From Macrostomum lignano (taxonomy: Eukaryota): 64,000 bases of DNA. Numbering within the stretch: the stretch's first letter is position 1; each line of letters opens with the position of its first letter. A program made the translations under genes and the position numbers. Of the stretch, positions 3,316 through 36,670 are shown piece by piece. Under the pieces are notes generated by a model. That model did no database searches. It worked only from the letters and a program-made list of their open reading frames with translations, and was not told the DNA's origin. The stretch spans positions 248,001 to 312,000 of the forward strand of contig NIVC01000413.1 of assembly GCA_002269645.1 (NCBI GenBank), written 5' to 3'.

Positions 3316-6022
3316 CTGTGGACTATAGATAAGAATAGCTTATTTGTTAAAAAAAACCTGTAAGTAACCTAGACTTAAGCAAACAGTTATTTAAATTTTG
3401 CTATCTTAAAATTTCAATATACTAAACACTTTTCATAGAACCAGAAACCTAAGATTAGTATTTCACCTTGCCAACCTAGTATACATTGATTTAAAATTGG
3501 ATTATGTCAATTTGCAAAGCAATTGCTATTGGCTTTACTGATGTATCAAATGATATAGTACATAATTTTTAATAACTAAATATTCAAGTTTAATATACTT
3601 GAACTACTTTTGTTTTAATTAAGGTGGTTAAACATTAAACCATCTCATTAAACCAATTCAAAATGTTAGGATACTTATTCGAAAATCTTGACTTCTTTCT
3701 AAACTTCTAAACTCTTCTAAACTTAACTTTATAATGCATAATTCTTTTCAAAAAAAGTTTCATACAGTTTTTCTATATATTAAAAAAGTATATGAATTGA
3801 ATAGTACTGCCAATGATACCAAAGGATAATTTTCTTTTTAATATTAACAATATACTTAAGTTAAAAAGCATTTAATAGTGGCACTACTAAGATATTATCT
3901 TTTGGATACTAATAATACCTATGTTGTAATAGTGGCTCTAACAATCCTTGTTTTATTACCTTTTTTACAAATAACTTTTTATAATACTTGCTATTATTAA
4001 CATTTTTAGACATCTCAAAGATTTACAAAAAGCCTAATTCCTAATAGGGTATAAAATAAAAAATACCATGGCATTGATATAAAAAACTGAAAGCAAATCT
4101 TTTAATGTATAAACTAATTTATTTTATTTTTAAGTTAAGTAATTAAACAGTAAACTTCAAATGTTTTAGACTATACTTAAAGTAATTAAGCTTATTATTA
4201 AGCTTATTATACAAATAAATTTATCAATAAACTATAAAACATTTATAGTTTTATAAAAACAAAATAAATAAAATCTTACATGCATCATATAGGACTTATT
4301 AAAATATAAAATTCTTATCATTGACATTATAATGTTGTCTAACACTGTATTTCTATATACATATGCACTAGCACTACCCTCTTTCAATGTATATACACCA
4401 TAAAGACAGTCATTCAATGAAACACTTGAACTAAACAACACTTTGTCTTGATTATACTCAATTGATATGCTAAGGTATAAATTATAAATACACCACTAGC
4501 AAGCATATAGGATTATAGCTAGTACTAGTACATAGTTTCAAAGTTAAAGCTCAAATTACATCATGACATTAGCTATTTTTAATCTAAGCCTAAGGTTAGA
4601 TAATAGATAAAACCACTAAAATTCTCTCTAGCCTAACCTCTACCCCTACGCCCAATCGCCATTCATAATTTATTTAGATGTAGTATGACTTTTGGATACA
4701 TAGTCATTTCATCAGCGGCATAAATGTCAGTCAAATAGCATAGCACATAGCAAAAGTCTCAATATGACAACCCTTGGTCAAAAAATTGCAATAGAGTTTT
4801 GAATAGCACTTTAAACTAAGATTTATACATAATTCTCAGACCCAAACCCGGGGGGTTTAGTCATTCTTTCCGGTATTTTTCCTTCTTAGAAAAAAGAAGT
4901 TGAAATGCGAATACTCGCACGAAAATAACGTGAATTTAAATCCGTTAAATTGCTAAAACCCGGTAGAAAGCATTCTTTTGGAGTAATTGTAAATGTATAG
5001 TTCGATTCGAGATAGAAGACAAACTTCTGAAGTTTTTAGATCTAAATTTTTTTTACTTTGAAAAAGTGCAAATTCCAAGGACCACTGTAGAATAATAAGA
5101 CGAAAACTCAAAGATCGCGCAATTTTTGGAGGCCAACTTCCTGGAAAAAACGCAGTGCGGTGATAGGAAAACTTTTTTAACGCAAAATTAATGATTGAAT
5201 TTGATCTAAGGCATAGAAATTTACCATTCTTTTAATATAGCATGCACAACATACGCTACTCTGTAGTATTTAGGGCAGTGAATGCTTCATTTTACATATA
5301 TATTTGGTTTCTTATTTTGTCAGCCTAAGCTATTAGTTGTAAATTAAAATACTCACCATTGAAATTATTATTTTATTTCTTCTTGAGTCGAGTATTTTTA
5401 ATATTTGTATTAGCATATCCTCTATGTATCTTTGTAAAGTAAAACTTTGGTTTGGTCCTGAAATGTAAAGAAAACAATATCTGAAAATAGAAATTTCACT
5501 GCATATCTGTATAAAATACTACAGAGTAGCATGCCGTGCCTATGATATATTAAAGGAATATTCTTCATCTTCAGTGCCTTTTTATCAAATGCAATCATTG
5601 ACTTTGTTATGAAGAAAGATTTTTTTTCGGTGTATTTTTTCTCGAAATCAGCCTCCGTAAAATTACACTATCTCTGAGTTTTGCGTCCTTGTTATACTTA
5701 CAGTGTTTCTTAGTTAAACATTGCTGTTACTTTTCAGTGACCTTTTTTACTTGAATCAAATGTTTGAATTCAGCTTGATGGAACTAATCCTATTTTTGAT
5801 TGTCTACGTTTAGTTCTACATGTAAATCAGTCCAGAACATGTTTATGAAAACTTTAATAAATTAGAATATTTATGTATAGTCTAGATGCGCAAAGATATA
5901 ATATTTTTTTTTCAGGATGGAATCAATTTCACAATTGCGTTCCTTTATGCGTACTGTATGCATTTCTTAACATCCAATGAAAAGTCTTTGCTTGTTACTA
6001 TTGTTTTGCGTCAACCAATATA

Positions 6023-7363
6023 CGAGGGTCATCCCAAAAGTTTCAGAAATCGAATGATTTTTGTGCCATAGACAACTTTTAGGACTACAGCACTTATACC
6101 ACACGAAAGATGAGCATATTTCGGGTGTCTGAGTAAGTTTTTAGCATTCTAGCTGCAAAATTCTGTTTTCTAAAGAACATTTTGTGAGATCCTAAATCAA
6201 ACATCGGCCGACAACGATAAAATGGAATTTCCGTTGAACTTGGAGCAGCGCTCATACATTAAAACGGAATGTCTTCGTGGTGTCCATGCAGCTCAAATTC
6301 ACCGTCAGTTGCTGCAGACCCATGGGCCAAATGCGATGAGCCAGCGAGCCGTGTACGACTGGTACAGTCGATTCAAGAATGGCCGCTCTGATGTCGAGGA
6401 TGACCCATGATCTGGAAGGCTAAAAGAAGCTCGCACAGAGTCGAACATCGAGTTGATCCAAGGGCTGCTGAACATCGATCGCCGTTGGACATGCGAAGAA
6501 ATGGCTGAGCTGTCCGGATCCCCTCGTCGAGTGTGCATCGGATCCTCATCCAGGATCTTGGACTGCAGAAGGTCACAGCCAGGTGGGTGCCGCACCATCT
6601 CACGGATGACAACAAGGCACGCCGGGTGACAGCTGCTCAGCAGCTTCTGCATCGGTTCAGGAGAGAGGGTTCGGCTTTCCTAGACCGTATTGTCACGCTT
6701 GACGAGACTTGGATCTGTTCGTACGAGCCCATCTCAAGAGTCGAATTCCGAGTGGCAGTCGAAAGGTTCTGCCCAGCCATTAAGACCATCAGTTCTGCGG
6801 CGCGCCAAGGGAGCCGACAAAATGATGATCATCGCATGCTACGACAGCTTTGGCATTATTCTCATCCACCGCGTTCCTGAGGGCCAAAACATCAACCAAC
6901 AATACTATCGGAGCTTCATTATTCACCATCTTCGGCCTGCCTTGCACAAAAAGCGGCCACAGACCCTGGAACTTGGTCCACTCCTTCTGCACGACAATGC
7001 CAGTTCGCACACAGCCCGCATTGTGCAGGACCTACTGCGGGACTACCAGTGGGAGGTGCTGCCTCATCCTCCTTACTCCCCAGACCTCAGTCCCTGCGAT
7101 TTCGACCTTTTCCGAAGCTTAAGAACCAGCTCCGAGGGCGTCGTTTCCATTGCCTGGATGACCTGTTCAGCGAGGTCGGCCGCATTGCAAAAGACCTGTG
7201 CGAATCCGGCGCTGCTGACGGCGTTCAGAAGTTGCCTGGCCGCTGGGAGCGCACAATTCAAGTCAACGGAAGTTATTTTGAAGGTTTTTGACCTGTTCAT
7301 TGTTCTGACACTCGTTTGTTGAAAATTAGTAGGCGTTTGCTGAAACTTTTGGGATGACCCTCG
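6023..7363 (+). mobile_element. Full-length mariner (DD34D) DNA transposon, non-functional
   Basis: Perfect 24-bp TIRs (CGAGGGTCATCCCAAAAGTTTCAG) with TA duplications at 6021-6022 and 7364-7365. Confidence 0.97.
6222..7291 (+). pseudogene. Mariner transposase pseudogene
   Basis: WVPHHL, TLDETW, HDNA and YSPDLSPCDF motifs, with 34 residues between the 2nd and 3rd Asp. Premature TGA at about 6408 and frameshifts near 6525, 6730 and 7112. Confidence 0.95.
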
Positions 7364-8839
7364 TAGAACAATCTTGTAATAAAACATCAAAATAAACTAG
7401 CTCGTAACTTATTCAAATTGATAAAAAACAATGATCCTTTCATACAGTATAGAGTTGCGTATGCAACTTGCGTACAGAAATTCTCACCTCCGCATAGCCG
7501 GCATACCTGGAATGCGGTGAGGATAGCGTGGATACATAAGATGTTTTCGAAGTTATCGAATATAGGTATATTTGGCGATTCAATTTTATACCTAACATGC
7601 ACACAGGAATAATATAGCAGTACATACTCTAGAGCTCTAGAGCATTATGGACAAGCAAGCAAACATACAAACCTTAGAGATTTAGTATATTTTATATATT
7701 TTAATATATACATATATATTTATAGTATCTGTGCATGGTGGTCCTTGTGTGCATATTTAAATTTTAACAAAGGAAAATTCAACAATTGTACTCGTATCAC
7801 CCACTATGTACGAGCTAATCATTTTTTCTGCTCTATACAAATCATCCCAAATGCCATCATTTTGTATTCTAAAGCCTATAAGACTTCACATGCATTAAGT
7901 TTTAGCATTGAAAATAAATGTGCATACCGTACGTCATGTACATGTACTTACCGTAGCCGGTGCTTCCTCAGCCGTGGTCCGAAAAACGATTCCGGAAGAT
8001 TTCCAAGAAACAACGAGACTCTCCGATCGATCCGCAGCCATGAGTTCCATGGCCGGAATTCGAAACATGATTTTCAGGCTGCGAGAGGCTTTAAAATGAT
8101 TCAACACAAGCCTTAAAAAGTCGCAACAGGATCTGTTTATCCATGGCCAAGACGCGAGCTTGGACTCATACGTGAAAAATCCACTACAATTACCTGAGAG
8201 TTTAAGCGACTACAATTAAGGCTATTTAAAGGGAGAAGTGACGAAACTTCCGTAAAGCCTAGCTCTATGACTCAAAACAACGTTTTAGGAATCAAGGAAG
8301 TTGCTGAATGGGTTAGAGTATTTCACCTTGTCTTGGGCAGTTCAAGCCTGCTCCATGCAGCTACTCAGCATCATTCCACAAGAGTTTAATTCCTACGTCA
8401 ACTTCCTCTTAACATTAATAATATATTAGGCGTGGGGGCCATTGCACGAAGATCAACTCAAAAACAGTTCACCAATCATTCTGCATGCAGTGCTACTATT
8501 ATTGTTCTGCAGTAGACAACAGTGAGAACACTATACCCCGGGTAAGTGTACGCCTCAGATAGTCTGCACGTACACTCTAGATTCCTGCCTCAAGAAGTAT
8601 GTGTGGCATCTATCAATAAGCAATTCGATACTTCCCTATAGGGAGTCGGAACCAACCAATCGTTTTTTACTATCAAAGATAAAAGTACGTTCGGATAGGA
8701 AGGTGGAATAATTTTCTATTTGCTCTTTGATCGCAACTGGAATTTACACATACGCTGTTTGAGAAAGGACAGCTTGACCCTAAGTCGATATACATTTACT
8801 GGTGGCTACTTCTTATAAACGAAGACTCAAAATTTTATC

Positions 8840-9365
8840 TAGAGAAGTGGAATAGCCTCTAGGGAAGTGGAATAGTCTCTAGAGAAGTAGAATAGTCTCT
8901 AGAGAAAGTGGAGTTGTCTCTAGAGAAGTGGAATAGCCTCTAGTGAAGTGGAGTTGTCTCTAGAGAAGTGGAATAGCCTCTAGGGAAGTGGAGTTGTCTC
9001 TAGAGAAGTAGAATAGTCTCTAGAGAAAGTGGAGTTGTCTCTAGAGAAGTGGAATAGCCTCTAGTGAAGTGGAGTTGTCTCTAGAGAAGTGGAATAGCCT
9101 CTAGGGAAGTGGAGTTGTCTCTAGAGAAGTAGAATAGTCTCTAGAGAAGTGGAGTTGTCTCTAGAGAAAGTGGAGTTGTCTCTAGAGAAGTGGAGTTGTC
9201 TCTAGAGAAAGTGGAGTTGTCTCTAGAGAAGTGGAATAGCCTCTAGGGAAGTGGAGTTGTCTTTAGAGAAGTAGAATAGTCTCTAGAGAAGTGGAATAGC
9301 CTCTAGAGAAGTGGAGTAGTCACTCTAAAGAAGTGGAATGGTCTCTAGAGAATTGAAATAGTCGT
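8840..9365. repeat. 20-21-bp minisatellite with internal palindrome TCTCTAGAGA
   Basis: Units CTAGAGAAGTGGAGTTGTCT and CTAGAGAAGTGGAATAGCCT alternate, about 25 copies. Confidence 0.92.
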
Positions 9366-9677
9366 TAGGGAATTAGAATAATTTTTATGGAATACTCGTA
9401 CATGTAGTTTTATCACTAAAAGCTAAGAAGTTGACAGCATACATTCGTAGCAAAGCTGAAAAATTTCAGCAAAAACTACGCTCGCAATTGTCTCAAAGTT
9501 GAAATAAATGAGTATAGATGAATTTTGGAATGTCATTTTAACGTTTTCCGTGTGCAAAATTTAGCATTGACGTAATGAGGTTGAAGCGAAAACAGATTTG
9601 TAACAAAATTTGCTTGTTTAGCGTACTTCGCATTTTGATAATACAATTTTAATCCTGCATGTCACTCCAGCCATCAG

Positions 9678-10965
<1,288 letters not shown>

Positions 10966-12555
10966 ATTAGCGAGAGAATATGTTAGTTAATGAATCTGTA
11001 AATTTAATGCACTTTCTGATTGCTTGTAATCAAAATCAGAGCGCATACACAAATGAAGCTATTGCTAATTGCTCTTCTATGAAAAATATTTTGATAAAAT
11101 TAATTATTCAAAGAACGTTGCGTTATGCACATGTAGTTATTAAGCCTTTTTGCGAATTTAATCGACTTTGAGTCGGATGGATATTCCTCTGCTCAGGATG
11201 TCTATGGCCTAAAGGGCCCTCGGGTCCTTTGCAACATCACAATAGTCAATAGTAACCACAGATAGGTTTGTGTCTCTTCTCATCTGTCTTATCTCTAATA
11301 ATCTCCTCTCTCTTTTTCTTTCATCTCCTCTCTACTCTCCTCTCCCTTATCATCTCCTCCTCTCCTCTTCTCTCTTCTCTTCTCCACATCCTCTCTCTAC
11401 CTTCCTCTGACCAGAAGTCATGTGATAGGTTCTCTATCTGGCCCTTGATGCACGAGAAACAAAAGTTTGTCGTCTGTCTGGGTCAATATGGTCAATGGCC
11501 TTGATTGAAGTTATGCTGCAGCTGCACAAATCTGCTTAGAAAAGTTATAACTTCTATAACTATTTGACTTTCACTGCGTCCAGTTTTGTGCTTTGCAAGG
11601 AACCCAGCAGAATTCATATTCACCCTGCAGACTGAGAATTGAAATCACTAGGCAATTTGGTTTATGTCACGAACATTCACTGTCTCTTTCTCTGTCCAAC
11701 AGACAACAGATTTTAGCGCATGGTTCTCTCTCTACGCCATTCTTTACTTTAGCCATGCCATCCAGCTGTGGCCAAAATTAATCTCTGTTGTCTATGGCCT
11801 TTCTATGGTTTGTCTGTGTCAGATCTTTGCCACGCTACCACGTCACACTGCTGACAGTCAGGCGCCGATTTGAATAAAGAAAATGTAGAGGTTTAATTCA
11901 TAGAATTCTACTGCAAGTAGAGCAACGCACACATGCGCACCAAAACTTGAACTATGAATAATGTTATAGCGAAGAAATGAATCATAATCACTATTTACAA
12001 CAAAAAACGAGTCATGTTACTATTTATAACGAGAAGAGGAGTCATATTACCTTTTATAGCGAAAAGATGAGTCATTATATTTCACAAAAATTGCCTATAA
12101 ATACAAACGCAAAATCCGAGCTGAAATCTCAGACGTTTGGAGCAGCCTCAAAGCATCTTGAGCTAACGGGAGAAGCTAATCGAGGCTACATCTCTGAGGA
12201 AGACGAATACCGTTCGGTAAGCCCTTGTTCGAGCCTTTGTTATTAGATTGATTGAGAGCGATTTTATTGCCGGCCGTTACTAATCAGTTGATTCCACTGA
12301 GTTTATTGCGTTTGAGGCCTCCCCTTTTCCTAAGGATATTGAGGATATTAAGGGGATCCTCAATAGGATCTGCGGACCGATTCCGATACCCTTAGAGAAT
12401 TCTCGATTGATTGATTTGGATTACCCAAGAGTAACCGATAGGAGCTGCACACGACTCCGATTTCGTTATTTCTACGAGTAAAAGAAGACGCCTCTTTTTG
12501 GAGGACCTCGTCATTGTTATAGAAAGTTGACTTTGTTATTAGGGCGCATCGTTGA

Positions 12556-12888
12556 TATTGATTTCTGCACTCGAGGAATATATTGATTTCTGCACTCGAG
12601 GAATATATTGATTTCTGCACTCGAGGAATATATTGATTTCTGCACTCGAGGAATATATTGATTTCTGCACTCGAGGAATATATTGGATTTCTGCACTCGA
12701 GGAATATATTGGATTTCTGCACTCGAGGAATATATTGGATTTCTGCACTCGAGGAATATATTGGATTTCTGCACTCGAGGAATATATTGGATTTCTTAAC
12801 TCGAGGAATATATTGATTTCTGCACTCGAGGAATATATTGGATTTCTGCACTCGAGGAATATATTGGATTTCTGCACTCGAGGAATAC
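12556..12888. repeat. 25-26-bp minisatellite (TATTGATTTCTGCACTCGAGGAATA)
   Basis: About 13 tandem units. Confidence 0.93.
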
Positions 12889-14409
12889 TGTGACGTCGAC
12901 GGATTCAAGTGTTACACTCTCACTTTCGGCCGATTTTAGAATTCAAGACTACTCCGGAGGAAGAAGAATTGAAGAAACGAGCTCGGAGAACCTGCCCGAC
13001 AAAGAAGAGGAGCCCGCACCGGTAAGTGAGCACTGAATTCTGTTCCCAGGCTTAAGGTCTGGAAGTGGGAGTTTTCGGGTGACTGATCATCGCCCGATCA
13101 AACTCTTCAAAAAACAAATTGGTTACATAAAATGTGTGCACTTTTGATAGCCTTACTTTGTTTATTGGTTTTTACTCTCAACAATAAAAAACTTTCATGT
13201 GTTCACTTTAAACTGCTACAATCAAAGTTTAATTCAATTGAATTGTTGTATTGCTGTTCAATAACAAATAGGGAGGCCACGAACTATAGCAAGAGTGCAT
13301 TTGCCAGTGCAGCAGCTTTTGTATCCGTACCAGCGAGGGCCGCAGAGTTGACCGAGACCAGCACATTCTCTAAAAATTAAAATTAAAAAAATCATGATAT
13401 AATTAAAATAACAGAATTTTGGAAATTAAGGTGAAACAACAAGAAGAGTGGTTGGTCAAACTGCGTTGGCTCATGAAGCCTGTCTATCCGACCCTCGGGT
13501 CCTTTAAGAACTTCACAATGGCAATTCGGCCTAATCAAGATTTGTGTCGCTTCTTAGCTCTCTTCCTTACTCTCTACTGTCTCTCGTCTTTCCTCTCTTC
13601 TCCAAGCTGGCATACAAATAAATAAATATGAAACAATTCGATTTTCTCACTCAACGGAATAGCCAGGCCATCCTGGTGGCCAAGGCTGCACATGTGGCAA
13701 TGACTCATCCGCCGGGTTGAATGTCGATGGCACATCAGTCCGTCCATCAGCCGAGACAGAAAGCAGTTGGATGGCAAATAGACTCTCGCCTATAGCCAGA
13801 ATGCAACGGAAATGCATCGCGAAATTTGAGGTCGAACTTTCAGGGGTTTGTTAATTTTAAAAGTAGGCCATATAATTTGTGGCATATAATCACAATATAC
13901 TTCATAGCCTATAGTTCAAAACGAGCTTCAGAGACGTTGCTAAGTCAAACTTGTCTCAATGAACTCGTGAAGTTAGACTGACAGACACGGGAAAATGTTG
14001 AGTCAGACCATAGACTATGCATTTTAAACCTTCACGGCAAAAGTTAATTTTGTGTACGTCGTATAAGATAACACCCCACAGATTTGTTTCTTTGGCGTAT
14101 AGAATCGCTTCTACTCGGCCTAGAAACGCGTCCGAAGCCATTCTTTACACCATAGACAGCAAATCTGGGGGGTGTTATTAGATTTGAACCTAAGTGTAGC
14201 TCAGCCAGGTGATCTCAAATCTCAAGCAGCTAATCAATTCGCAATCGTACTTTCTGGCAAGTCCAATTCGACATGGAAGACAGTTTACCTTCCGATCCTG
14301 GCGATATTGAGACCCCAGATATGGAGATTTCTCCGGATCTACTGGACTTTCTTATACAAACAGAAAATGAGTCACAGTTGGCGCGCTCCAGTAAAAATAA
14401 GGGAATGAT

Positions 14410-14894
14410 TTCAGACACTGACAGAAGCGGACGTTCAGCAAAAGATTGAGGAGACCTCGACAACAAGAAGGAAGGCAGAATGGGCAATCCAAATCTTCCG
14501 AGATTGGCACAACGAGAAAAAGCATCTTTGGGCCACAGGCGGTAGTCCATCTCTAATGGTTTTAAACGACGTGGACAAAATGTCAAAAAGTGAGCAAACC
14601 AGAGTCTTCGCAAAACCTGCGCCACCCGACTACATGAAGCTGGTGTACAGCGTGCGGACATGTCGCGTGACTAGAAATTCCAGTTCCGCTGTGGAGAGAT
14701 ACATCGGTGTATCTGTGCCAATGCAGAAGAACATGAGTGCAATTGTTGCCGGAGTTTCACCGGCTGGAGAGAAGGCTGCTGATTCGCGCAACGAGCTACC
14801 AGAGCAGACTGCGAGCCTCGAGATGTCAATGAAGAAGAGGATGCGGATTGAAACGAATGGCGACACCAACACTGTTTCTTTCTACTTCGACTGA
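14410..14894 (+). pseudogene. YR1: internally deleted Crypton-type (DUF3504-like) tyrosine recombinase
   Basis: The N-terminal block FQTLTEADVQQKIEE...AEWAIQIFRDW joins directly to SLRKTCATRLHEAG (shifted frame) and ...SAVERY. The core catalytic region is missing. The C-terminus RIETNGDTNTVSFYFD resembles that of YR3. Confidence 0.75.
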
Positions 14895-15697
14895 CAAGTT
14901 TCATGATATGTTTCCGGATGTATGGAATGATTCGGACAGACGGACTGACTGGCTTTTTAAATTTATTATTTTTCTTCTCTTCTAATGTTTTTGCTGTTCT
15001 GCACTAGCTGATTTCACGGCCCGGCCGTGAAATATTTCCTGGCCTGGCCATTACATACCATATAGACACTGGACTGAGCTAAATTGGGGTTTAAATAGTT
15101 TTGCATATTCTGACAAATTTAAAATCATTTTTGACGATTCCGAATTTGAAATGTTAGGAGCTTTAATAACTGCCAAAACACTTTGAATGTTTATGAAATC
15201 CTTTAAATGTCTTTGGGGCGGTTGTAATGTATCTCCATATCTATTTTAAAAGGAATCATATTTTGTACTTATTTCTCACTGTATTATTTGTATTTCATAT
15301 TTGTATTCTGTTTCTGCATTTACTTTACTTTTTAGTGTATGTACTCGTATTTATATAATTTTGCATAATTGTTCTATAATGTAGTTTGTTTTATTGCTCA
15401 ATGTAACTAATATATAATAAATATCGCTCGTAAGAGTTCGCCGCGCGCTGATTTGGCATTTTCGACTGATCGTGATAATTCAAGTGACAGTCCTCGGCAT
15501 TCATTTTATTATACGGTAAGAATTCAGATAAATGCTAAACTTAAATCACGACCGACGGCATACCACCGCATAGTTGTGACCATAGAATACGAGTACAACT
15601 AAATTGTAAATAAAGTTCAAGAAATTAGCGATCCAAGATATTTGCAAAATTTTGAGGTCAGAATTTGATTTGTTGCTAATTTGTCAGACTGTCAACA

Positions 15698-16024
15698 ATG
15701 CGACTAAATACGACTGTAATAGTTTTAGTTTTTCTGTCAGAAGCAGTTCAACTTTCACGATGTAGTTCAGCAGAGTCTGTCACAACAGCCGAATCGAACA
15801 GAACAAAAATGTGGTTAGTGCGCAAACCAAGGTCAGGATTTTAACAAACTTTTTCTTTTAGTTATTTTCCTTTTTCACAGTGATTTTTCTGTTTTAGGTA
15901 CGCTGCAAGATGCTTGGAACGGTACGAAATTTGCGCTACAATACCCGAAGGACTCATCGGTGCTTGCTGCCCAGAATTAATTTGTCAACGTTTCTCAAAT
16001 TTCTACTGGGCTTGCTCTGTTTGA
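15698..16024 (+). CDS. Secreted inhibitor-cystine-knot (knottin)-like prepropeptide K2, 86 aa; exons 15698-15831 and 15898-16024
   Basis: Protein MRLNTTVIVLVFLSEAVQLSRCSSAESVTTAESNRTKMWLVRKP-R-YAARCLERYEICATIPEGLIGACCPELICQRFSNFYWACSV*. A 66-nt phase-2 GT-AG intron follows a long polypyrimidine-rich acceptor region. Cys spacing C-x6-C-x10-CC-x4-C-x9-C. Confidence 0.82.
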
Positions 16025-17121
16025 ATTTGACGGCTGAGCCATGTATTTTTCTGAACTCACTTTGACTAGTAAGTTAGTTGTTTTACTCGTTAAAAGCTCG
16101 TTCGAATTTAACTAAATGGGATCTGGATTATTCTACTGAAGTAAGATGAAAACTAAAGCGCTTAACGCATTAAGTATATATAACATTTCAACTTTGGATC
16201 CGTCAAAAGTAAGTTGAAATTCCCCAGCGTAAGTGTACTATGATAACATTGTTATTGACTACTAGCAAAGTTCTATAATAATTTGATTGTCATTATCTTA
16301 GATCAATGCCAGAAAATTCCGGGTGATAATCTATAGAAATTTGCGGGCTGATTCGCTAATGGATAGACTAAATTTAGGAAAGAGAGGGACAAGAGATCGA
16401 GAAGTTTTTTTCAGTGTTTGGATGAGAGGAACTTAAGAAGTTCATGTTCTGTTCAGAAAGCCATTCGGAGACTTAATAACAACTGTATAAGCGATTTACT
16501 TCTTGAGAATGTTGAACTTGGCGAATCTGCCGGATCAAATGGTATCCGGATTATCAACGGAGGAGCTGTATTGGGTGACGTCCGAATCTGCAACTCGATA
16601 TCTGGAGGAACTGAGTGGCCAGTTTGCTCGAAGACTGGAGACCGAAGAAATTCCAGACTTAAGTGAATATGCGCTCGATGATCTGAGAGAGCTTGAACAA
16701 GAAGGAATTCAGAGTCGTGAATTTCAATGGGACGTTCCAGAATTACACTTTCGATTTAGGCGGTATTAATGGTAAGCAGTAATTTATCGAAAGTGAACGC
16801 TTGTTTAACGGAACGAACTGAGCTTCCTAACTGATCATCTGTTTCATTGTTAATATTAACGTACTGTACTATTGTCACTACTGCAGTTTCGTTGCTGTCT
16901 GATAAAAAGTATACTTGTTTGTTACATTGTAATTATACTTTTACCCAGACGCAATGAAAAAATCTTTTGGCCATTATTCCACAGTTTTGATGTGTACCAT
17001 AGACATTTGGATTGAAAAAATCCATCGCTCAGTATTTTTGTTAATAAATACAGAAAAACAAGAAGTAAATGAACAAAAAGGAAAAATCATTAAAACTAAA
17101 GTACCAGCTACACGAAAAGAG

Positions 17122-18339: not shown

Positions 18340-19868
18340 AGCATTGACATTTCAGTAATTCTCTCCAACAGTCATTATAGCACTACAGCATTATAGCGAT
18401 TCCCTGCAAGCCTCGACATCCTAGGGATTCCCAAATGAATCTCCTAACTTCGACATGAAGCTTATTTTATTTTTTACATTACGCTTTTTTTATCAGCGAT
18501 CCCTCCCCTGAGGAGGCATCAAATAATGTAATAAAAAGTTTTCAATAAACTACATGTAGCTTCTGACTTTAGCCTTGACATCTCATTTATACCCCCATGA
18601 GCCTTGACATCTCAGCTATTCCCCCCGTAAGCCTTGACATGACAGCAATGGCCCCCATAAACCTTGATATCTGAAAAATCCCCTGTTAACCTTGAAACCC
18701 GCTAAAATCTAACCCTCAACCCACACCTGACTTAAACCTAACTTTAACCCAACCTAAAGCCTTGAAATCTCAGCAATTCTTCTCCCCTAAGCCTTGACAT
18801 TTTAGTGATTCCTTCTTTAAGAATCACAGCACTATAGCGATTCCCTCCAAGCTTTGACATCGTAGCAATTCCCAAATGAATCTTTTAACTTCGACATGAC
18901 TCTTCTTTTATGTATACATAGTGCTTCTTTTCTTTTTTACATGACTCTTCTTCTATCAGCGCCCCCCCATGGCAAGCCAACAAAGAATGTAATAAAAAAT
19001 TGAGTAAAGTACATGTACTTTGACGTAGCTTCTGACTTTTGCTTTGACATCTCAGAAACCCCCCCCCCGTAATCTCAGTTATTCTCCGTGAGCCTTGACA
19101 TCTCAGTAAGTCTCCCCAGCACAGCACAATAGCTTCATTTAATTTTTACATGACACTTCTTTCATGTCTGACATGACGCTTCTTTTATTCTTCCATGACG
19201 CTTCTATAATTTCTCAAATGACACTTCCATTACTTTTATATAAGGCTTCTATGATTTTTTACATGACGCTTCTATGATTGTTTACATGACGCTTCTATGA
19301 CTTTTTACATGACGCTTCTATGATTTTTTACATGACGCTTCTATGATTGTTTACATGACGCTTCTATGGTTGTTTACATGACGCTTCTATGATTTTTTAC
19401 ATGACGCTTCTATGATTTTTTACATGACGCTTTTATGATTTTTTACATGACGCTTTCATGATTTTTTACATGAAGCTTCTATGATTGTTTACATGACGCT
19501 TCTATGATTTTTTACATGACGCTTCTATGATTTTTTACATGACGCTTCTATGATTTTTTACATGACGCTTCTATGATTTTTTCATGACGCTTTCACGATT
19601 TTTACATGACGCTTCTATGATTTTTTTACATGACGTTTTTATGATTTTTTACATGACGCTTCAATGATTGTTTACATGACGCTTCTATGATTTTTCACAT
19701 GACGCTTCCATGATTGTTTACATGACGCTTTCATGATTGTTTACATGACGCTTCTATGATTTTTTACATGACGCTTGTATGATTTTTTACATGACGCTTC
19801 TATGATTTTTTACATGGCGCTTCTATGATTGTTTACATGACGCTTCTATGATTTTTTCATGACGCTTT

Positions 19869-20322
19869 TGAAGTGAAACGAAGGCGCCGTTAGCAAGAGG
19901 ATGTGAGAAATCAGCCGACACGCGCGTGATGCGTGAACAAGCATCCAGCCTTGGCAGCAACTCCCCAGACGCACAAGATCTGCATGCCTAAAAATAGTCC
20001 TGATGATCGGCGAGCAAGAAGCCCAGCCATGCGACCCTCGCGTGATGCATGCACAACCTCTGACCGACACTGCCTATTGGGCCTCGAAATCCCACTCTCT
20101 CTCTCCCTACTGCTCCTATTCCTCGTTGCTCGCGTACAGTGTGCTAGCTTATAAAATATACTGATTGAAGAGGAAAGAAAGATCCTCGCCTGAAGTTTGA
20201 GAATGTGACTCTAGAGATCACACAGAGAAAGTTACCATCGAGGTCCATTGTTCGTTGTCTTCCTGAACTGTTGGCAGAAGGAAACGATAATATGGGAAAA
20301 ACCCAAATAAATTGTCGTTTCA
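19869..20322 (+). mobile_element. Solo LTR (454 bp), copy 1
   Basis: TGAA...TTCA termini and a 4-bp TSD CTTT at 19865-19868 and 20323-20326. TATAAAA and AATAAA inside. Removing it restores the satellite unit GACGCTTTCACG. Confidence 0.8.
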
Positions 20323-21541
20323 CTTTCACGATTTTTACATGACGCTTCTATGATTTTTTTACATGACGCTTCTATGACTTTTTACATGACGCTTCTATGA
20401 TTTTTTACATGACGCTTCAATGATTGTTGACATGACGCTTCTATGATTTTTTACATGACGCTTTTATGATTTTTTACATGACGCTTCTATGATTTTTTAC
20501 ATGACGCTTGTATGATTTTTTACATGACGCTTTTATGATTTTTTACATGACGCTTTCATGATTTTTTACATGAAGCTTCTATGATTGTTTACATGACGCT
20601 TCTATGATTTTTTACATGACGCTTCTATGATTTTTTCATGACGCTTTCACGATTTTTACATGACGCTTCTATGATTTTTTACATGACGCTTCTATGATTT
20701 TTTACATGACGCTTCAATGATTGTTTACATGACGCTTCTATGATTTTTCACATGACGCTTCCATGATTGTTTACATGACGCTTTCATGATTGTTTACATG
20801 ACGCTTCTATGATTTTTTACATGACGCTTGTATGATTTTTTACATGACGCTTCTATGATTTTTTACATGGCGCTTCTATGATTGTTTACATGACGCTTCT
20901 ATGATTTTTTCATGACGCTTTCACGATTTTTACATGACGCTTCTATGATTTTTTTACATGACGCTTCTATGATTTTTTACATGACGCTTCAATGATTTTT
21001 CACATGACGCTTCCATGATTGTTTACATGACGCTTTCATGATTGTTTACATGACGCTTTTATGATTTTTTACATGACGCTTGTATGATTTTTTACATGAC
21101 GCTTTTATGATTTTTTACATGACGCTTTCATGATTTTTTTACATGAAGCTTCTATGATTGTTTACATGACGCTTCTATGATTTTTTACATGACGCTTCTA
21201 TGATTTTTTACATGACGCTTCTATGATTTTTTACATGACGCTTCTATGATTTTTTCATGACGCTTTCACGATTTTTACATGACGCTTCTATGATTTTTTT
21301 ACATGACGTTTTTATGATTTTTTACATGACGCTTCAATGATTGTTTACATGACGCTTCTATGATTTTTCACATGACGCTTCCATGATTGTTTACATGACG
21401 CTTTCATGATTGTTTACATGACGCTTCTATGATTTTTTACATGACGCTTGTATGATTTTTTACATGACGCTTCTATGATTTTTTACATGGCGCTTCTATG
21501 ATTGTTTACATGACGCTTCTATGATTTTTTCATGACGCTTT

Positions 21542-21995
21542 TGAAGTGAAACGAAGGCGCCGTTAGCAAGAGGATGTGAGAAATCAGCCGACACGCGCGT
21601 GATGCGTGAACAAGCATCCAGCCTTGGCAGCAACTCCCCAGACGCACAAGATCTGCATGCCTAAAAATAGTCCTGATGATCGGCGAGCAAGAAGCCCAGC
21701 CATGCGACCCTCGCGTGATGCATGCACAACCTCTGACCGACACTGCCTATTGGGCCTCGAAATCCCACTCTCTCTCTCCCTACTGCTCCTATTCCTCGTT
21801 GCTCGCGTACAGTGTGCTAGCTTATAAAATATACTGATTGAAGAGGAAAGAAAGATCCTCGCCTGAAGTTTGAGAATGTGACTCTAGAGATCACACAGAG
21901 AAAGTTACCATCGAGGTCCATTGTTCGTTGTCTTCCTGAACTGTTGGCAGAAGGAAACGATAATATGGGAAAAACCCAAATAAATTGTCGTTTCA
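21542..21995 (+). mobile_element. Solo LTR, copy 2 (product of the 1673-bp duplication)
   Basis: Same sequence, same CTTT TSD and same flanks as copy 1. Confidence 0.8.
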
Positions 21996-23873
21996 CTTTC
22001 ACGATTTTTACATGACGCTTCTATGATTTTTTTACATGACGCTTCTATGACTTTTTACATGACGCTTCTATGATTTTTTACATGACGCTTCAATGATTGT
22101 TGACATGACGCTTCTATGATTTTTTACATGACGCTTTTATGATTTTTTACATGACGCTTCTATGATTTTTTACATGACGCTTGTATGATTTTTTACATGA
22201 CGCTTTTATGATTTTTTACATGACGCTTTCATGATTTTTTACATGAAGCTTCTATGATTGTTTACATGACGCTTCTATGATTTTTTACATGACGCTTCTA
22301 TGATTTTTTCATGACGCTTTCACGATTTTTACATGACGCTTCTATGATTTTTTACATGACGCTTCTATGATTTTTTACATGACGCTTCAATGATTGTTTA
22401 CATGACGCTTCTATGATTTTTCACATGACGCTTCCATGATTGTTTACATGACGCTTTCATGATTGTTTACATGACGCTTCTATGATTTTTTACATGACGC
22501 TTGTATGATTTTTTACATGACGCTTCTATGATTTTTTACATGGCGCTTCTATGATTGTTTACATGACGCTTCTATGATTTTTTCATGACGCTTTCACGAT
22601 TTTTACATGACGCTTCTATGATTTTTTTACATGACGCTTCTATGATTTTTTACATGACGCTTCAATGATTTTTCACATGACGCTTCCATGATTGTTTACA
22701 TGACGCTTTCATGATTGTTTACATGACGCTTTTATGATTTTTTACATGACGCTTGTATGATTTTTTACATGACGCTTTTATGATTTTTTACATGACGCTT
22801 TCATGATTTTTTACACGAAGCTTCTATGATTTTTTACATGACGCTTCTATGATTGTTTACATGACGCTTCTATGCTTTTTTACATGACGCTTTTTTACTC
22901 GTCATGCCTTTTGTCCTTTATTTGTCCTTTAATAAAAGCTTATAATAAAAAAAACTTTTCACTACTAAGATTCGAACCCAGGTCGCAGCATTTGCAGTCC
23001 AGTTTGTTCACATCTAGGCTAGCTCTTATCGAATTTATAAATGAAATTGTAGAACTTATATAATTCAACACTCACTCACGAAGCAGTTATGACATAATCA
23101 ATTTCCCAGGCAAGTCAGTATCAGTCTCAAATAAAGTTGAGAATTATGGTTACGCAATCTAAATCAAGTCTGGTGCTACGCTTCCACACTGCATTTTCAA
23201 TACTGTGACGCAATTCAAGTCGGAGTTACAATTCAGTTATGATGCAATCTATTTCAGAATCAGAACTCAACCAGTCAGTTTTTTTCTCTAGCATTCTTAC
23301 AATGCATTTCAAGTCGAAAAGTTTGCTTGACCTTTGCAAAAAAGCATGTTTTTCGAATATTTAATGCCTTTAGCATCGAGAAATTTCTTAGCCACGATGC
23401 ATGTACCGTCACGGGAAAATTTCTGATCGAACAGTGCAAGTCTCATGAAAATCGGTTAAGCCATTTTTTCTCTAATCGATTACATTTAGGTTTAGTTGTT
23501 CATAGACAATTAGAGGCAAGACTAGCAATCTAGCGCCCCCCTTCGGGGTGGCCAATAAGCAAGGGACGAATCCTTTAAAATGAAAAAAAATTCTTAGGGA
23601 GGGGGGCTAGGAATCGAATTCTCATTTTAATTCCAGGCTTATGTACCAATAAAACATGTTTGTGCAGAATTTTATAACAGACATTGAAATTCAACCATAC
23701 TTGCCTTCTTTCAGAGCTACTTCTACCAGTATGCTTCAGTACGCTACCAGTACCCGTGTAAGCCTTGACATGTCAGCAATCCCCCCCCCACAAGCCTTAA
23801 CATATCAACTCCCCCCTTGACATCTCAGCGATGCTCCCATAAGCCTTGAAATCTTAAAAAATCTGTCTACTTT

Positions 23874-23919: not shown

Positions 23920-24864
23920 AGCATTGAAATTTCAGTAATTCTCTCTAAGAGTCTATAGCACTACTACAGCATTAAAGCGATTCCCTGCAAGCCTCGACAT
24001 CGTAGGGATTCCCAAATGAATCTCTTAACTTCGACATGAAGCTTCTTTTTTTTACATTACGCTTTTTCTATCAGCGATCCCTCCCGTGAGGAGCCAACAA
24101 AAAATGTAATAACTTTTTTCCAATAAACTACATGTAGCTTCTGACATTAGCCTTGACATCTCATTTATTCCCCCGTGAGCCTTGACATCTCAGCTATAGA
24201 TAGATAGATAGATAGATTCCCCTCGTAAGCCTTGACATGTCAGCGATGCCCCCCATAAACCTTGAAATCTAAAAAATCCCCTGTTAACCTTGAAACGCGC
24301 TAAAATCTAACCCTCAACCCAAACCTGACGTAAACCTAACTTTTACCCAACCTAAAGCCTTGAAATCACAGCAATTCTTCTTCCCTAAGCCTTGGCATTT
24401 AAGTGATTCCTTCTTTAAGAATCACAGCACTATAACGATTCCCTCCAAGCTTTGACATCGTAGCAATTCCCAAATGAATCTTTTAACTTTGACATGACTT
24501 TTATTTTATGTATACATAGTGCTCCTTTTATTTTTACATGACTCTTCTTCTATCAGCGCCCCCCCCACCGTGGCAAGCCAACAAAGAATGCAATAAAAAA
24601 CTTAAGTAAAGTACATGTACTTTGAAGTAGCTTCTGACTTTTGCTTTAACATCTCAGAAACCCCCCTGTAATCTCAGTTATTCTCTGTGAGCCTTGACGT
24701 CTCAGTGATTCTCCCCAGCACAGCACTATAGCTTCATTTAATTTTTATGACACTTGTTTCATGTCTGACATGACGCTTCTTTTGATTTTTACGTTACGCT
24801 TCTTTTATTCTTCCATGATGCTTCTTAATTTTTTAAATGACACACTTTCATTAGTTTTTATATG

Positions 24865-25435
24865 AGGCTTCTATGATTTTTTCATGACGCTTCTATGTTA
24901 ACATGACGCTTCTATGCTTGTTTACATGACGCTCTTATGATTGTTTACATGACGCTTCTATGCTTGTTTACATGACGCTCTTATGATTGTTTACATGACG
25001 CTTTTATGATTGTTTACATGACGCTTCTATGATTGTTTACATGACGCTTGTATGATTGTTTACATGACGCTTCTATGATTTTTTACATGACGCTTCTATG
25101 ATTTTTACATGACGCTACTATGATTTTTACATGACGCTTCTATGATTTTTTCATGACGCTTCTATGATTTTTACATGACGCTTTTATGATTGTTTACATG
25201 ACGCTTCTATGATTTTTACATGACGCTTCTATGATTTTTTACATGACGCTTCTATGATTGTTTACATGACGCTTCTATGATTGTTTACATGACGCTTCTA
25301 TGATTGTTTACATGACGCTTCTATGATTTTTACATGACGCTTCTATGATTTTTTACATGACGCTTCTATGATTGTTTACATGACGCTTCTATGATTGTTT
25401 ACATGACGCTTGTATGATTGTTTACATGACGCTTC
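24865..25435. repeat. 22-bp satellite, same family as 19240-22890
   Basis: Same ACATGACGCTTCTATGATT unit. Confidence 0.93.
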
Positions 25436-25584
25436 CATAATTTTTTTTGTCTTGGCGTTAAAAAGATTTAATTAAAAAAACTCTACTCTCTAAAAATTCG
25501 AACCATCGTCCCTGCATTTAGCAGTTTAGTCTGTTTACCTCTAGGCTAGCTCTCATGAATTTTAGTCATTACCCCTAAATAGAA

Positions 25585-25820
25585 AATATTCCCAAGACAG
25601 CAAGCATCCCCCAGTAGCAAGCATCCCCTAATACTCCTAGCAAGCATCCACCCAGATAGCAAGCATCTGCAGATAGCAAGCATCTGCAGATAGCAAGCAT
25701 CTTGCAGATAGCAAGCATCTTGCAGATAGCAAGCATACCCCAAATAATGTAGAAGCATCCTTCCAGATAGCAAGCATCCTGCACATAGCAAGAATCCCTA
25801 AATAGCAAGCATCCCTGGAT
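25585..25820. repeat. About 17-bp repeat (CAGATAGCAAGCATC), same family as 33400-33840
   Basis: Tandem TAGCAAGCAT cores. Confidence 0.85.
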
Positions 25821-25855
25821 AGAAATAATCCTATACATGTAGCCAAGCTTATCAA

Positions 25856-27355
25856 GCGCAGTAATCCTTGGCTATCGAGTGCAGTAATCCTTGGTTTATT
25901 AATAGCAATAATCCATGGCTTATCGAGTGCAGTAATTCTTGGTTTGCCAAGTGCAGTAAGTAATCCTTGGTTTATTAATAGCAAGAATCCATGGCTTATG
26001 AGTGCAGTAATCCTTGGTTTATTAATAGCAATAATCCTTGGCTTATCGATTGCAGTAATCCTTGGTTTATTATTAGCAATAATCCTTGGCTTATCAAGTG
26101 CAGTAATCCTTGGTTTATTAATAGCAATAATCCATGCCTTATCGAGTGCAGTAATCCTTGGTTTATTAATAGCAATAATCCTTGATTAATCAAGTGCAGT
26201 AATCCTTGGTTTATTAATAGCAATAATCCTTGGCTTATCGAGTGCAGTAATCCTTGGTTTATTAATAGCAATAATCCTTGATTAATCAAGTGCAGTAATC
26301 CTTGGTTTGCCAAGAGCAATAGTCCTTGGTTTATTGAGTGCAGTAATCCTTGGTTTATTAATAGCAATAATCCTTGGCTTATCGAGTGCAGTAATCCTTG
26401 GTTTGCCAAGTGCATAATCCTTGGTTTATTAATAGCAATAATCCTTGGCTTATCGAGTGCAGTAATCCTTGGTTTATTAATAGCAATAATCCTTGGCTTA
26501 TCGAGTGCAGTAATCCTTGGTTTATTAATAGCAATAATCCATGGCTTATCGAGTGCAGTAATCCTTGGTTTGCCAAGAGCAATAGTCCTTGGCTTATCGA
26601 GTGCAGTAATCCTTGGTTTGCCAAGAGCAATAGTCCTTGGTTTATTGAGTGCAGTAATCCTTGGTTTATTAATAGCAATAATCCTTGGCTTATCGAGTGC
26701 AGTAATCCTTGGTTTGCCAAGTGCATAATCCTTGGTTTATTAATAGCAATAATCCTTGGTTTATCGAGTGCAGTAATCCTTGGTTTATTAATAGCAATAA
26801 TCCTTGGCTTATCGAGTGCAGTAATCCTTGGTTTATTAATAGCAATAATCCATGGCTTATCGAGTGCAGTAATCCTTGGTTTGCCAAGAGCAATAGTCCT
26901 TGGCTTATCGAGTGCAGTAATCCTTGGTTTGCCAAGAGCAATAGTCCTTGGTTTATTGAGTGCAGTAATCCTTGGTTTATTAATAGCAATAGTCCTTGGT
27001 TTATTGAGTGCAGTAATCCTTGGTTTATTAATAGCAATAATCCTTGGCTTATCGAGTGCAGTAATCCTTGGTTTATTAATAGCAATAATCCTTGATTAAT
27101 CAAGTGCAGTAATCCTTGGTTTGCCAAGAGCAATAGTCCTTGGTTTATTGAGTGCAGTAATCCTTGGTTTATTAATAGCAATAATCCTTGGCTTATCGAG
27201 TGCAGTAATCCTTGGTTTATTAATAGCAATAATCCTTGATTAATCAAGTGCAGTAATCCTTGGTTTGCCAAGAGCAATAGTCCTTGGTTTATTGAGTGCA
27301 GTAATCCTTGGTTTATTAATAGCAATAATCCTTAGCTTATCGAGTGCAGTAATCT
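25856..27355. repeat. 24-bp satellite organised as 48-bp dimers
   Basis: GAGTGCAGTAATCCTTGGTTTATT alternates with AATAGCAATAATCCTTGGCTTATC. Confidence 0.95.
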
Positions 27356-31788: not shown

Positions 31789-32769
31789 CTACTCAAATAC
31801 AAATTCAATGACGTTGGTGTCACCATTGGCTCGAATCTTCAAATTCTTCCGATTTTCCGGAATAACTCGCACACAGCGCACCGAGCCCGACGTAGGATCG
31901 TTGATAACGTCAACTGGGTCACTTGCCTCAGTGCCTACAACTTGAGGGTCGGCCGTAGTAGCCACCTCCACGGCAGCCGTTAGTTGATGGCTCATAGCAC
32001 AGATCGCTTGCTCTCGTTTATTCCCTCGTCGAATGTAGCGCTCGACGGATGCACCTCGCTTGTGGCCAGTCACTTTAGCGATAGTTTCGACATTAAATCC
32101 AGCGTCGTGAAGTTCTGTGATTACAGTTGCACGCACACAATGCGCAGTGTATGGCTTGGACAATCCGGCGGACGTAGAAATTTTCTTCATCAGAGGCCCA
32201 AGGGTGTTGACTCCTACTGCACTCTTGCTGTACCACTTACCAGATGAACGAAAGTTAGCGTTTGGTCGCAGAAAGAAGTCCACTCCGTTCCATCCTTCAA
32301 CTTCGGTGACCTTTTGCTTGTACAGTCTGAACGCCTCAACTGGGCATTTGGCAGAATCTCCCTTTGACACCATCAACGCTTGCTTGTTGTCAACCAAGAC
32401 GGCGACGCTGATAGAACCATGTAGATTCTTTGAATCTCCCTGAACAAGCTCAATCGCGTAGAGTCCATTGGCGAGCCGCTTCTCACAAAACCGATCAAAC
32501 CTCAAACCACGCAACCATTCACGGCCTCTATTCCCATAGTAATAAATGATGTTAAAGTATACTTCCTCTTGAAGACGCACCGGATTCGACCGATCGAAGT
32601 ATTTACCGAGCTTCTTCAGGTCGTCACTCTCAATAGCATCGTAGTGCTTCACTCTTCCTCCAGATCGAAGGAAAGCGTTGCAAATGCTCTTCATGGTAAG
32701 ATTGGCGGCATGAAAGGCTTTATCATTTATTATGTCAATCGCTCGCAACTTCATAATATGGCGAAACAA
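31789..32769 (-). CDS. YR3: Crypton-type tyrosine recombinase, uninterrupted catalytic domain but 5'-truncated
   Basis: 326-codon open frame with RGRE, HCVR, TGH and VERY. Clearly homologous to YR2 from LFRH onward. The N-terminal domain is absent (in-frame stop just upstream). Confidence 0.85.
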   Translation of the reverse strand: MFRHIMKLRAIDIINDKAFHAANLTMKSICNAFLRSGGRVKHYDAIESDDLKKLGKYFDRSNPVRLQEEVYFNIIYYYGNRGREWLRGLRFDRFCEKRLANGLYAIELVQGDSKNLHGSISVAVLVDNKQALMVSKGDSAKCPVEAFRLYKQKVTEVEGWNGVDFFLRPNANFRSSGKWYSKSAVGVNTLGPLMKKISTSAGLSKPYTAHCVRATVITELHDAGFNVETIAKVTGHKRGASVERYIRRGNKREQAICAMSHQLTAAVEVATTADPQVVGTEASDPVDVINDPTSGSVRCVRVIPENRKNLKIRANGDTNVIEFVFE

Positions 32770-33337: not shown

Positions 33338-33890
33338 ACTAGCAATCTACGCCCCCCGTTGGGGAGCAAATAAAGAATGAAATAATTTTAATAATGATGT
33401 AATGTAGCAAGTGATCCCCCAGATAGCAAGCAATCCCCCAGATAGCAAGCATCCCCCAGACAGCAAGAATTCCTTATACAGCAAGCAATCCCCCAGACAG
33501 CAAGCATTCCCCAGACAGCAAGCATTCCTCATACAGCAAGCAATCCCCCAGACAGCAAGCATTCCTCATACAGCAAGCTATCCCCCAGACAGCAAGAATT
33601 CCTTATACAGCAAGCAATCCCCCAGACAGCAAGCATTCCCCAGACAGCAAGCATTCCTCATACAGCAAGCAATCCCCCAGACAGCAAGCATTCCTCATAC
33701 AGCAAGCATCCCCCAGACAGCAAGCATCCCCCAGACAGCAAGCATCCCCCAGACAGCAAGCATCCCCCAGACAGCAAGCATCCCCCAGACAGGAAGCATT
33801 CCCCCAGACAGCAAGCATTCCCCAGACAGCAAGCACCCAAGACCCGGGGCACACACAGACAGACCATTTTTAACATCAGCCATATACGAG
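33338..33890 (+). mobile_element. H3: short Helitron-like element with a central 17-18-bp repeat
   Basis: 5' ACTAGCAATCTACGCCCCCCGTTGGGGAG and 3' ACAGACAGACCATTTTTAA resemble H2. Central (CCCCAGACAGCAAGCAT)n. Confidence 0.55.
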
Positions 33891-36132: not shown

Positions 36133-36670
36133 TAAGTGCTGGTGAACCATTGCTAAACTGCTGGTGAACCATTGCTAAACTGGTGGTGAACCATTGCTAA
36201 ACTGCTGGTGAACCATTGCTAAACTGCTGGTGAACAATTGCTAAACTGATGGTGAACAAATTGCTAAACTGGTGGTGAACCATTGCTAAACTGCTGGTGA
36301 ACCATTGCTAAACTGCTGGTGAACAATTGCTAAACTGCTGGTGAACCATTGCTAAACTGCTGGTGAACCATTGCTAAACTGATGGTGAACAAATTGCTAA
36401 ACTGCTGGTGAACAAATTGCTAAACTGCTGGTGAACAAATTGCTAAACTGCTGGTGAACCATTGCTAAACTGCTGGTGAACAAATTGCTAAACTGCTGAT
36501 GAACCATTGCTAAACTGCTGGTGAACCATTGCTAAACTGCTGGTGAAAAAATTGCTAAACTGCTGGTGAACCATTGCTAAACTGCTGGTGAACAAATTGC
36601 TAAACTGCTGGTGAACCATTGCTAAACTGCTGGTGAACAAATTGCTAAACTGCTGGTAAAAAATTGCTAA
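36133..36670. repeat. 22-23-bp minisatellite (TGCTAAACTGCTGGTGAACCAT)
   Basis: About 24 tandem units. Confidence 0.95.

Follow-up and report, generated by a model that had tools for sequence, protein, structure and literature searches.

K2, a short two-exon gene on the plus strand, is probably a functional and so far unannotated protein-coding gene of Macrostomum that belongs, with its two paralogs K3 and K1, to a tandem gene cluster for small secreted cysteine-rich peptides. The cluster was found in a 64,000-nt stretch of the Macrostomum lignano contig NIVC01000413.1. This whole stretch is referred to as the window, and all positions refer to it unless another contig is named. In a comparison with a second, diverged copy of the locus, the C-terminal six-cysteine domain of K2 is under strong purifying selection, while its signal and pro region change freely.

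Gene model of K2

An earlier note on this DNA had described K2 as an 86-aa gene with two exons and a 66-nt intron, and this model, including the quoted protein, was reproduced exactly from the sequence (Table 1). The spliced product has 86 aa and reads MRLNTTVIVLVFLSEAVQLSRCSSAESVTTAESNRTKMWLVRKPRYAARCLERYEICATIPEGLIGACCPELICQRFSNFYWACSV. Its cysteines are located at positions 22, 50, 57, 68, 69, 74 and 84. Cys22 is a seventh cysteine in the signal region, and the other six form the framework C-x6-C-x10-CC-x4-C-x9-C, after which two residues are left before the stop. The basic motifs upstream of Cys50 are RKPR (42-45) and AAR (47-49), without a dibasic KR or RR. Thus, the cysteine spacing and the basic residues before the mature region were all found as claimed before.

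Retention of the intron leads to in-frame stops, both in the window and in the K2 copy on NIVC01000271.1. The knottin frame of exon 2 is shut upstream by a TGA (15881-15883) and lacks an ATG ahead of the first knottin cysteine (Cys1). Therefore, the cysteine domain can be translated only once it is spliced to an upstream exon. The main donor, GTCAGG, is suboptimal. Use of the alternative donor after 15813, which is also kept in the NIVC01000271.1 copy, would result in an in-frame precursor of 80 aa that lacks LVRKPR, and the choice between the donors at 15831 and 15813 is beyond what sequence alone can decide. Within 1 kb downstream of the stop codon, the canonical poly(A) signal AATAAA is absent and only ACTAAA variants occur.

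Table 1. Positions of the three knottin-like genes, the elements of K2 and the minisatellite arrays in the window
Feature	Position	Strand	Description
K3	9678-10965	-	Exon 1 10965-10868; intron 10867-9814 (1054 nt, phase 2); exon 2 9813-9678
K1	13258-13817	-	Exon 1 13817-13651; intron 13650-13370 (281 nt, phase 2); exon 2 13369-13258
K2 cassette	15514-16195		Gene with ~185 nt upstream and ~170 nt downstream; inverted in place relative to K1/K3 in comparison with NIVC01000271.1 5337-6747
K2 exon 1	15698-15831	+	134 nt; start ATG 15698; end AAG/GTCAGG, phase 2
K2 exon 1, content			Putative signal at about residues 1-22 MRLNTTVIVLVFLSEAVQLSRC; polar pro-region at residues 23-45, ending in RKPR
K2 pro-region			N-x-T sequon at residues 34-36
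K2 alternative donor	15814-15819	+	TG/GTTAGT after 15813, phase 2; 18 nt upstream of the main donor
K2 intron	15832-15897	+	66 nt, T-rich; GTCAGG...polypyrimidine...TTTTAG; acceptor TTTTAG/G
K2 exon 2	15898-16024	+	127 nt including TGA 16022-16024; YAAR and 37-residue six-cysteine domain CLERYEICATIPEGLIGACCPELICQRFSNFYWACSV
Minisatellite arrays	11-405, 1276-1869, 2402-2848, 8838-9380, 12555-12887, 19143-22892, 24768-27354, 33406-33835, 36137-36671, 51348-51888		

A cluster of three paralogous genes

When all six frames of the 64-kb window were scanned with a strict ICK regular expression, three matches were obtained, all of them inside 9696-16015 (6.3 kb). In 200 shuffles, the same pattern was found 0.035 times per 64 kb on average, with a maximum of one match, and the cluster is therefore not due to chance. 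Besides K2, the pattern occurs on the minus strand at 13365-13264 (K1) and 9797-9696 (K3). K1 encodes a precursor of 92 aa with the C-terminal end ...EECAGLGQLCGPRWYGYKSCCTGKCTLAIVRGLPICY, and K3 one of 77 aa, with a (TAC)158 microsatellite at 10220-10695 in its intron.

Each of the three genes consists of two exons separated by a phase-2 intron, which is located two to six residues before Cys1, and the first exons measure 134 nt (K2), 167 nt (K1) and 98 nt (K3). This common architecture indicates that K1, K2 and K3 are paralogs. The signal peptides of K1 (...AIQLLSVSA) and K2 (...AVQLSRC) are similar. K3 has a different signal and no basic pro-site, and it is only ~20 % identical to K2 outside the cysteines. 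MAFFT alignments of K1-K3 placed the last two cysteines of K1 wrongly and were not used as input for AlphaFold2 (AF2).

A scan of the window for more cysteine-rich exons returned only repeat-derived artifacts and one unconvincing ORF with seven cysteines (KFQFRCGEIHRCICANAEEHECNCCRSFTGWREGC). This stop-free stretch on the plus strand (14675-14809) lies between K1 and K2, in a segment that is absent from NIVC01000271.1. It does not contain the ICK pattern and is probably a chance occurrence.

Comparison with a second copy of the locus

The contig NIVC01000271.1 of the same assembly (GCA_002269645.1, Mlig_3_7) contains a second copy that is 92-94 % identical to the window at the DNA level, with many indels. 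The published SNP divergence between the subgenomes of M. lignano is lower, at ~1.9-2.4 % (PMC10733133), and the window may be an unusually diverged paralogous block relative to NIVC01000271.1.

On this contig, K2 is intact at 5703-5836 and 5905-6031, with start, donor, acceptor, stop and all cysteines kept. The intron of the copy has a length of 68 nt compared to 66 nt and shows five mismatches in addition to a 2-nt indel. This indel and the in-frame stops indicate that the segment is non-coding. Across codons 46-86, seven synonymous changes and one replacement (E55K) separate the two copies. For the mature domain, this amounts to a dN of 0.010, a dS of 0.318 and a dN/dS of 0.033 (Nei-Gojobori), and the probability that at least seven of the eight changes are synonymous is 1.6e-4. 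If the same eight exon-2 substitutions are read in either of the other two frames, each frame would receive six amino acid changes. Codons 1-45 show two synonymous and eight replacement changes without any indel, corresponding to a dN/dS of ~1.4, and the partition between prepro region and mature domain is significant (Fisher p=0.015). The frame, the N-x-T sequon, R-x-x-R and YAAR are retained in the copy. The synonymous bias in the knottin frame, in conjunction with the intact structure, points to a translated gene in which the C-terminal domain would be the functional product and the N-terminus a dispensable leader. The earlier view of K2 as a genuine coding gene is upheld by this comparison, as the diverged copy preserves the ORF together with its two splice sites and its stop codon, and nearly all exon-2 changes (seven of eight) are synonymous.

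Both paralogs are also conserved. Exon 2 of K1 differs from its copy by two synonymous changes and no replacement, and the coding sequence of K3 (234 nt) is separated from that of its Mlig_3_7 copy by a lone synonymous base, compared to a divergence of ~6 % in the flanks. The near-identity of K3 amid diverged flanks points to very strong constraint or to recent gene conversion.

Several structural differences between the two copies were observed around K2. At the right junction of the cassette inversion, a segment of ~22 bp (16174-16195) can be aligned in either orientation, the window has no counterpart in NIVC01000271.1 for positions 14051-15514, and NIVC01000271.1 carries an insertion of ~550 bp located 20 nt past the stop of its K2 copy.

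Annotation and transcript support

A profile search with the three proteins found a single match, the hypothetical protein BOX15_Mlig029002g1 of Macrostomum lignano, to which K3 is 100 % identical over 77 aa. This protein, the sole member of the K family in public protein databases, has no functional annotation. It has the cluster, the two-exon phase-2 structure and the cysteine framework in common with K2, and its GenBank gene model in Mlig_3_7 is the same as the K3 model built here. For the K1 copy, a GenBank model of 56 aa at NIVC01000271.1 7043-7490 uses exactly the predicted intron (7128-7404), but an out-of-frame ORF. When read in frame from the ATG at 6958, the K1 copy encodes a knottin precursor of 93 aa with a mature domain identical to that of K1, and the 56-aa model looks like a mis-annotation. 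Since the GenBank models match the introns of K3 and of the K1 copy, two of the three family members have transcript-supported introns.

For Mlig_3_7, the GenBank annotation was built on transcript assemblies guided by RNA-seq, and transcripts classed as non-coding or overlapping repeats were dropped (PMC5730564). It contains no gene call at the locus of the K2 copy. Due to these annotation filters and the repeat-rich setting, the missing call is weak evidence. As it stands, K3 is annotated as "hypothetical", the K1 copy is mis-framed in GenBank and K2 is missing. The case shows how transcript-filtered annotation can lose or mis-frame very short genes for secreted peptides in repeat-rich regions. 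A search of the accessible literature found no report of a knottin from Macrostomum or any other free-living flatworm, and no mention of the locus tag Mlig029002 or of fragments of the K peptides.

Comparison with known sequences and structures

The K2 loops of 6, 10, 0, 4 and 9 residues are within the ICK consensus C-x(3-7)-C-x(3-10)-CC-x(1-4)-C-x(4-13)-C. Nevertheless, a Pfam search (hmmscan, E<=10) with K1, K2 and K3 matched no knottin or toxin family (Conotoxin PF02950, Toxin_12/Toxin_9, Tachystatin, UPF0506, Omega_toxin clan). An HMM comparison with such families, put forward in the earlier note as a check on K2, thus came back without a match. The only Pfam match of K2 at E<=10 was to the ET-module and remained sub-threshold, with 14.8 bits against a cut-off of 25; K1 and K3 had none. 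A word-indexed homology search of a 5.8-billion-protein index found no relatives of K2 or K1, and an exhaustive phmmer search of K2 against 1.84 billion representative proteins returned nothing credible. The lone phmmer match, a Ser-rich repeat protein of 3822 aa, covers the pro-region and was rejected as low-complexity noise. A search of the window against Rfam gave no match. Among PDB sequences, the best match of each paralog is an ICK toxin, none of them significant: muO-conotoxin MfVIA for K2 (E=0.57), mu-TRTX-Pre1a for K3 (E=0.075) and omega-Tbo-IT1 for K1 (E=0.34).

AF2 was run in single-sequence mode, with the 41-residue C-terminus as the query for K2. The resulting K2 model has a pLDDT of 71.6 and a pTM of 0.45, with the five models ranging from 45 to 72, and contains a C-terminal beta-hairpin (28-31/37-40). 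A Foldseek search of the PDB with this model gave 32 matches, almost all ICK/knottin structures, with TM values of 0.55-0.65 and non-significant E-values (E>=0.4). They include ACTX-Hi:OB4219 (TM 0.61), xibalbin, tachystatin A, MfVIA, agelenin, asteropsin G, J-ACTX, psalmotoxin and fungal CBM1. The K3 model (pLDDT 77.3) had 19 matches, again almost all ICK or related knottin folds and none significant. Structure prediction, also named earlier as a check, therefore gave a divided answer: the K2 model resembles ICK peptides, but no match reaches significance. A knottin fold is the best-supported reading of the K2 models, short of proof. In this fold, the six cysteines would form the canonical I-IV, II-V, III-VI knot (C50-C68, C57-C74, C69-C84).

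The ICK venom and defense peptides (spider ACTX-Hi:OB4219 1kqh, J-atracotoxin, agelenin, psalmotoxin, remipede xibalbin 7rz3, horseshoe-crab tachystatin A 1cix) are the top structural neighbors of the K2 and K3 models. They have in common with K2 the six-cysteine pattern C-C-CC-C-C over ~35-40 residues, the C-terminal beta-hairpin and a secreted precursor of the prepro type, both of which are predicted in K2. K2 differs from them in the lack of a significant sequence or structure score, in being anionic and hydrophobic instead of basic, and in the phase-2 intron just before the mature domain. To our knowledge, Macrostomum is a free-living, diatom-feeding flatworm that is not venomous and has no described venom apparatus. 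The earlier statement that the K2 features are hallmarks of venom ICK precursors is unsupported, since no curated knottin or toxin family was matched and the host is a free-living flatworm.

The closest PDB sequence, MfVIA (O1 superfamily, PDB 2n7f), matches K2 over the pattern C.E..E.C....G...CCP.LIC..F, and both peptides are hydrophobic, slightly acidic and end in C-x-V. In addition, the signal peptides of K1 and K2 resemble the conotoxin O1 signal, MKLTCVVIVAVLLLTACQL. In conotoxins, the signal is typically conserved and the mature toxin hypervariable. In K2 this pattern is reversed, with a conserved mature domain (dN/dS 0.03) and a variable prepro region (~1.4), and the phylum is different. 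Membership of K2 in the O1 superfamily was rejected on account of this reversal, of the unmatched PF02950 profile (E<=10) and of the E-value of 0.57. Convergence or a shared framework best accounts for the resemblance.

UPF0506 is a knottin-fold Pfam family with undefined function that occurs in parasitic flatworms (Schistosoma, Opisthorchis, Schistocephalus secretome; bioRxiv 10.1101/2020.02.03.932509). Its members are, as proposed for K1-K3, small secreted Platyhelminthes proteins with a knottin fold, but K1-K3 do not match its profile at E<=10. Macrostomum is a free-living, early-branching rhabditophoran. Given this position and the unmatched profile, K1-K3 would represent an independent or highly diverged lineage.

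Predicted signal peptide and precursor processing

The N-terminus of K2 is hydrophobic, with a 9-residue Kyte-Doolittle mean that peaks at 2.9 (residues 5-14) and the core TVIVLVFL. In the NIVC01000271.1 copy, the changes S14L and E15A make the signal more hydrophobic, with a 9-mer mean of up to 3.7. Glu15, which is Ala in this copy, sits inside the h-region of K2 and counts against a signal. The site S-R-C/S satisfies the -3/-1 rule and is aligned with V-S-A/D in K1. On the basis of the Kyte-Doolittle core and the small residues at -3/-1, the signal described in the earlier note is supported as a hydrophobic N-terminal one.

After removal of the 66-nt intron by splicing, the 86-aa prepropeptide would enter the ER via this signal. 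Cleavage would most likely take place after Cys22, judging from the alignment with K1 (...SVSA/D), with Ala16 as a possible alternative. A furin-type convertase may then cut after R-x-x-R45 (RKPR; RNPR in the other copy) or after Arg49. Such processing would free a hydrophobic, slightly anionic knottin of 37-41 residues, which would then be secreted. The predicted mature K2 has a net charge of -1 to -2 and a GRAVY of ~+0.5.

Upstream of Cys1, K1 has no basic residue within at least 20 residues and K3 has none within 13. Since both paralogs are without a basic site, Arg-directed maturation is a motif of K2 and not a feature of the family. Thus, the claimed removal of the propeptide at Arg corresponds to no more than a motif in K2, and the processed bioactive peptide proposed in the earlier note is a candidate product.

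Alternative explanations

Three other explanations of the data were considered. K2 could be an untranscribed or decaying duplicate, i.e., a pseudogene, or an ORF that arose by chance among repeats. In favor of this, GenBank calls no gene at the homologous locus, no identical or similar protein was found among the 5.8 billion and 1.84 billion database proteins, and minisatellites and transposon fragments abound in the region. In the same direction point the inverted cassette, the insertion 20 nt downstream of the K2 stop in the NIVC01000271.1 copy and the absence of a canonical poly(A) signal nearby. However, both copies, although they diverge by 6-8 %, retain the ORF with its start, stop and splice sites, the substitutions are strongly biased to the synonymous sites of one frame (P=1.6e-4), and all cysteines are kept. 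As the GenBank annotation filtered non-coding and repeat transcripts (PMC5730564), the absence of a gene call carries little weight. A pseudogene or chance ORF is therefore very unlikely. Taking K2 as a real gene, its six-cysteine domain could still be a secreted disulfide-rich peptide without ICK topology, either with another connectivity or with a non-knotted fold. AF2 was only moderately confident (pLDDT 71.6, pTM 0.45, models 45-72), every Foldseek E-value was at least 0.4, and no knottin Pfam family was found. This explanation is nonetheless unlikely, as the C-C-CC-C-C framework and the loop lengths are inside the ICK consensus, the PDB structures matched by K2 (32) and K3 (19) belong with few exceptions to ICK or related knottin folds, and the best PDB sequence matches of all three paralogs are ICK toxins.

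Another possibility concerns the precursor. The gene for a secreted knottin may be real, but the "propeptide" of K2 may not be cut at Arg, so that the product is the whole post-signal chain (~64 aa) or the form without RKPR made from the alternative donor. A division into signal, propeptide and mature peptide would then be over-interpreted. This would fit the lack of a basic site before Cys1 in K1 and K3, the phase-2 donor at 15813 that drops LVRKPR and keeps the frame, and the lack of dibasic KR/RR sites. Yet R-x-x-R is retained in the copy (RKPR to RNPR) and YAAR is identical despite six replacements in 23 pro-region codons, and rapid change in a spacer next to an almost invariant C-terminal domain is what a discarded pro-region typically shows. 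An uncut pro-region is possible, though somewhat doubtful. Overall, the most likely reading of K2 is a genuine gene that encodes a secreted knottin-like peptide and is part of a small cluster specific to flatworms.

Possible function and relevance

The K2 peptide might act extracellularly as a high-affinity ligand of a membrane protein, for example an ion channel or a receptor, a tentative proposal drawn only from charge, hydrophobicity and analogy. Its role could be defense, manipulation of prey or partner, or endogenous signaling. Because of the negative net charge and the positive GRAVY, a classical cationic, membrane-lytic antimicrobial role is less likely, and hydrophobic gating-modifier toxins are closer. 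One could imagine that Macrostomum has a lineage-specific, so far unrecognized ICK family that acts as neuroactive secretions, for example as a mucus/rhabdite defense toxin or as an ejaculate peptide manipulating the mate, and that K2 is convergent on the hydrophobic muO/delta-conotoxin gating modifiers of sodium channels. This scenario is quite improbable, but if true, it would be the first functional knottin "toxin" family known from any free-living flatworm, and it would come from a model that is genetically tractable.

In ion-channel pharmacology and peptide engineering, knottins are among the leading scaffolds, but outside venomous arthropods, molluscs, cnidarians and plants their occurrence has been charted poorly. 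M. lignano is amenable to RNAi and in situ methods. Transgenesis also works in this species (PMC5730564), and owing to this tractability, the biological role of a non-venom animal knottin is directly testable. The finding itself is incremental, adding one further six-cysteine peptide family with an activity that is still only predicted.

Other features of the window

Minisatellite arrays are unusually dense in the window (Table 1), with periods of 16-48 nt and lengths of up to 3.7 kb, and several of them give rise to long spurious ORFs. Three of the arrays flank or separate the knottin genes. Transposon-related sequences comprise a fragment of a mariner/Tc1-like DDE_3 transposase (6690-7322), a MULE transposase domain (29669-30337), a FLYWCH zinc finger (30213-30581) and two Crypton-like tyrosine-recombinase ORFs (Phage_integrase/DUF3504; 31789-32769 and 29016-29591).

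Two further ORFs on the plus strand, 47354-47881 and 57956-59017, had no significant match in Pfam. They have an N-terminal motif in common (LDVTDKALVEFGSCDASILALIKFPQ and LKVDASDKAYVEFRNCSSSMLILISFPE, respectively), which is followed by a hydrophobic, transmembrane-like stretch, and may be paralogous single-pass membrane proteins. The second of these ORFs ends in a coding tandem repeat of 96 nt.
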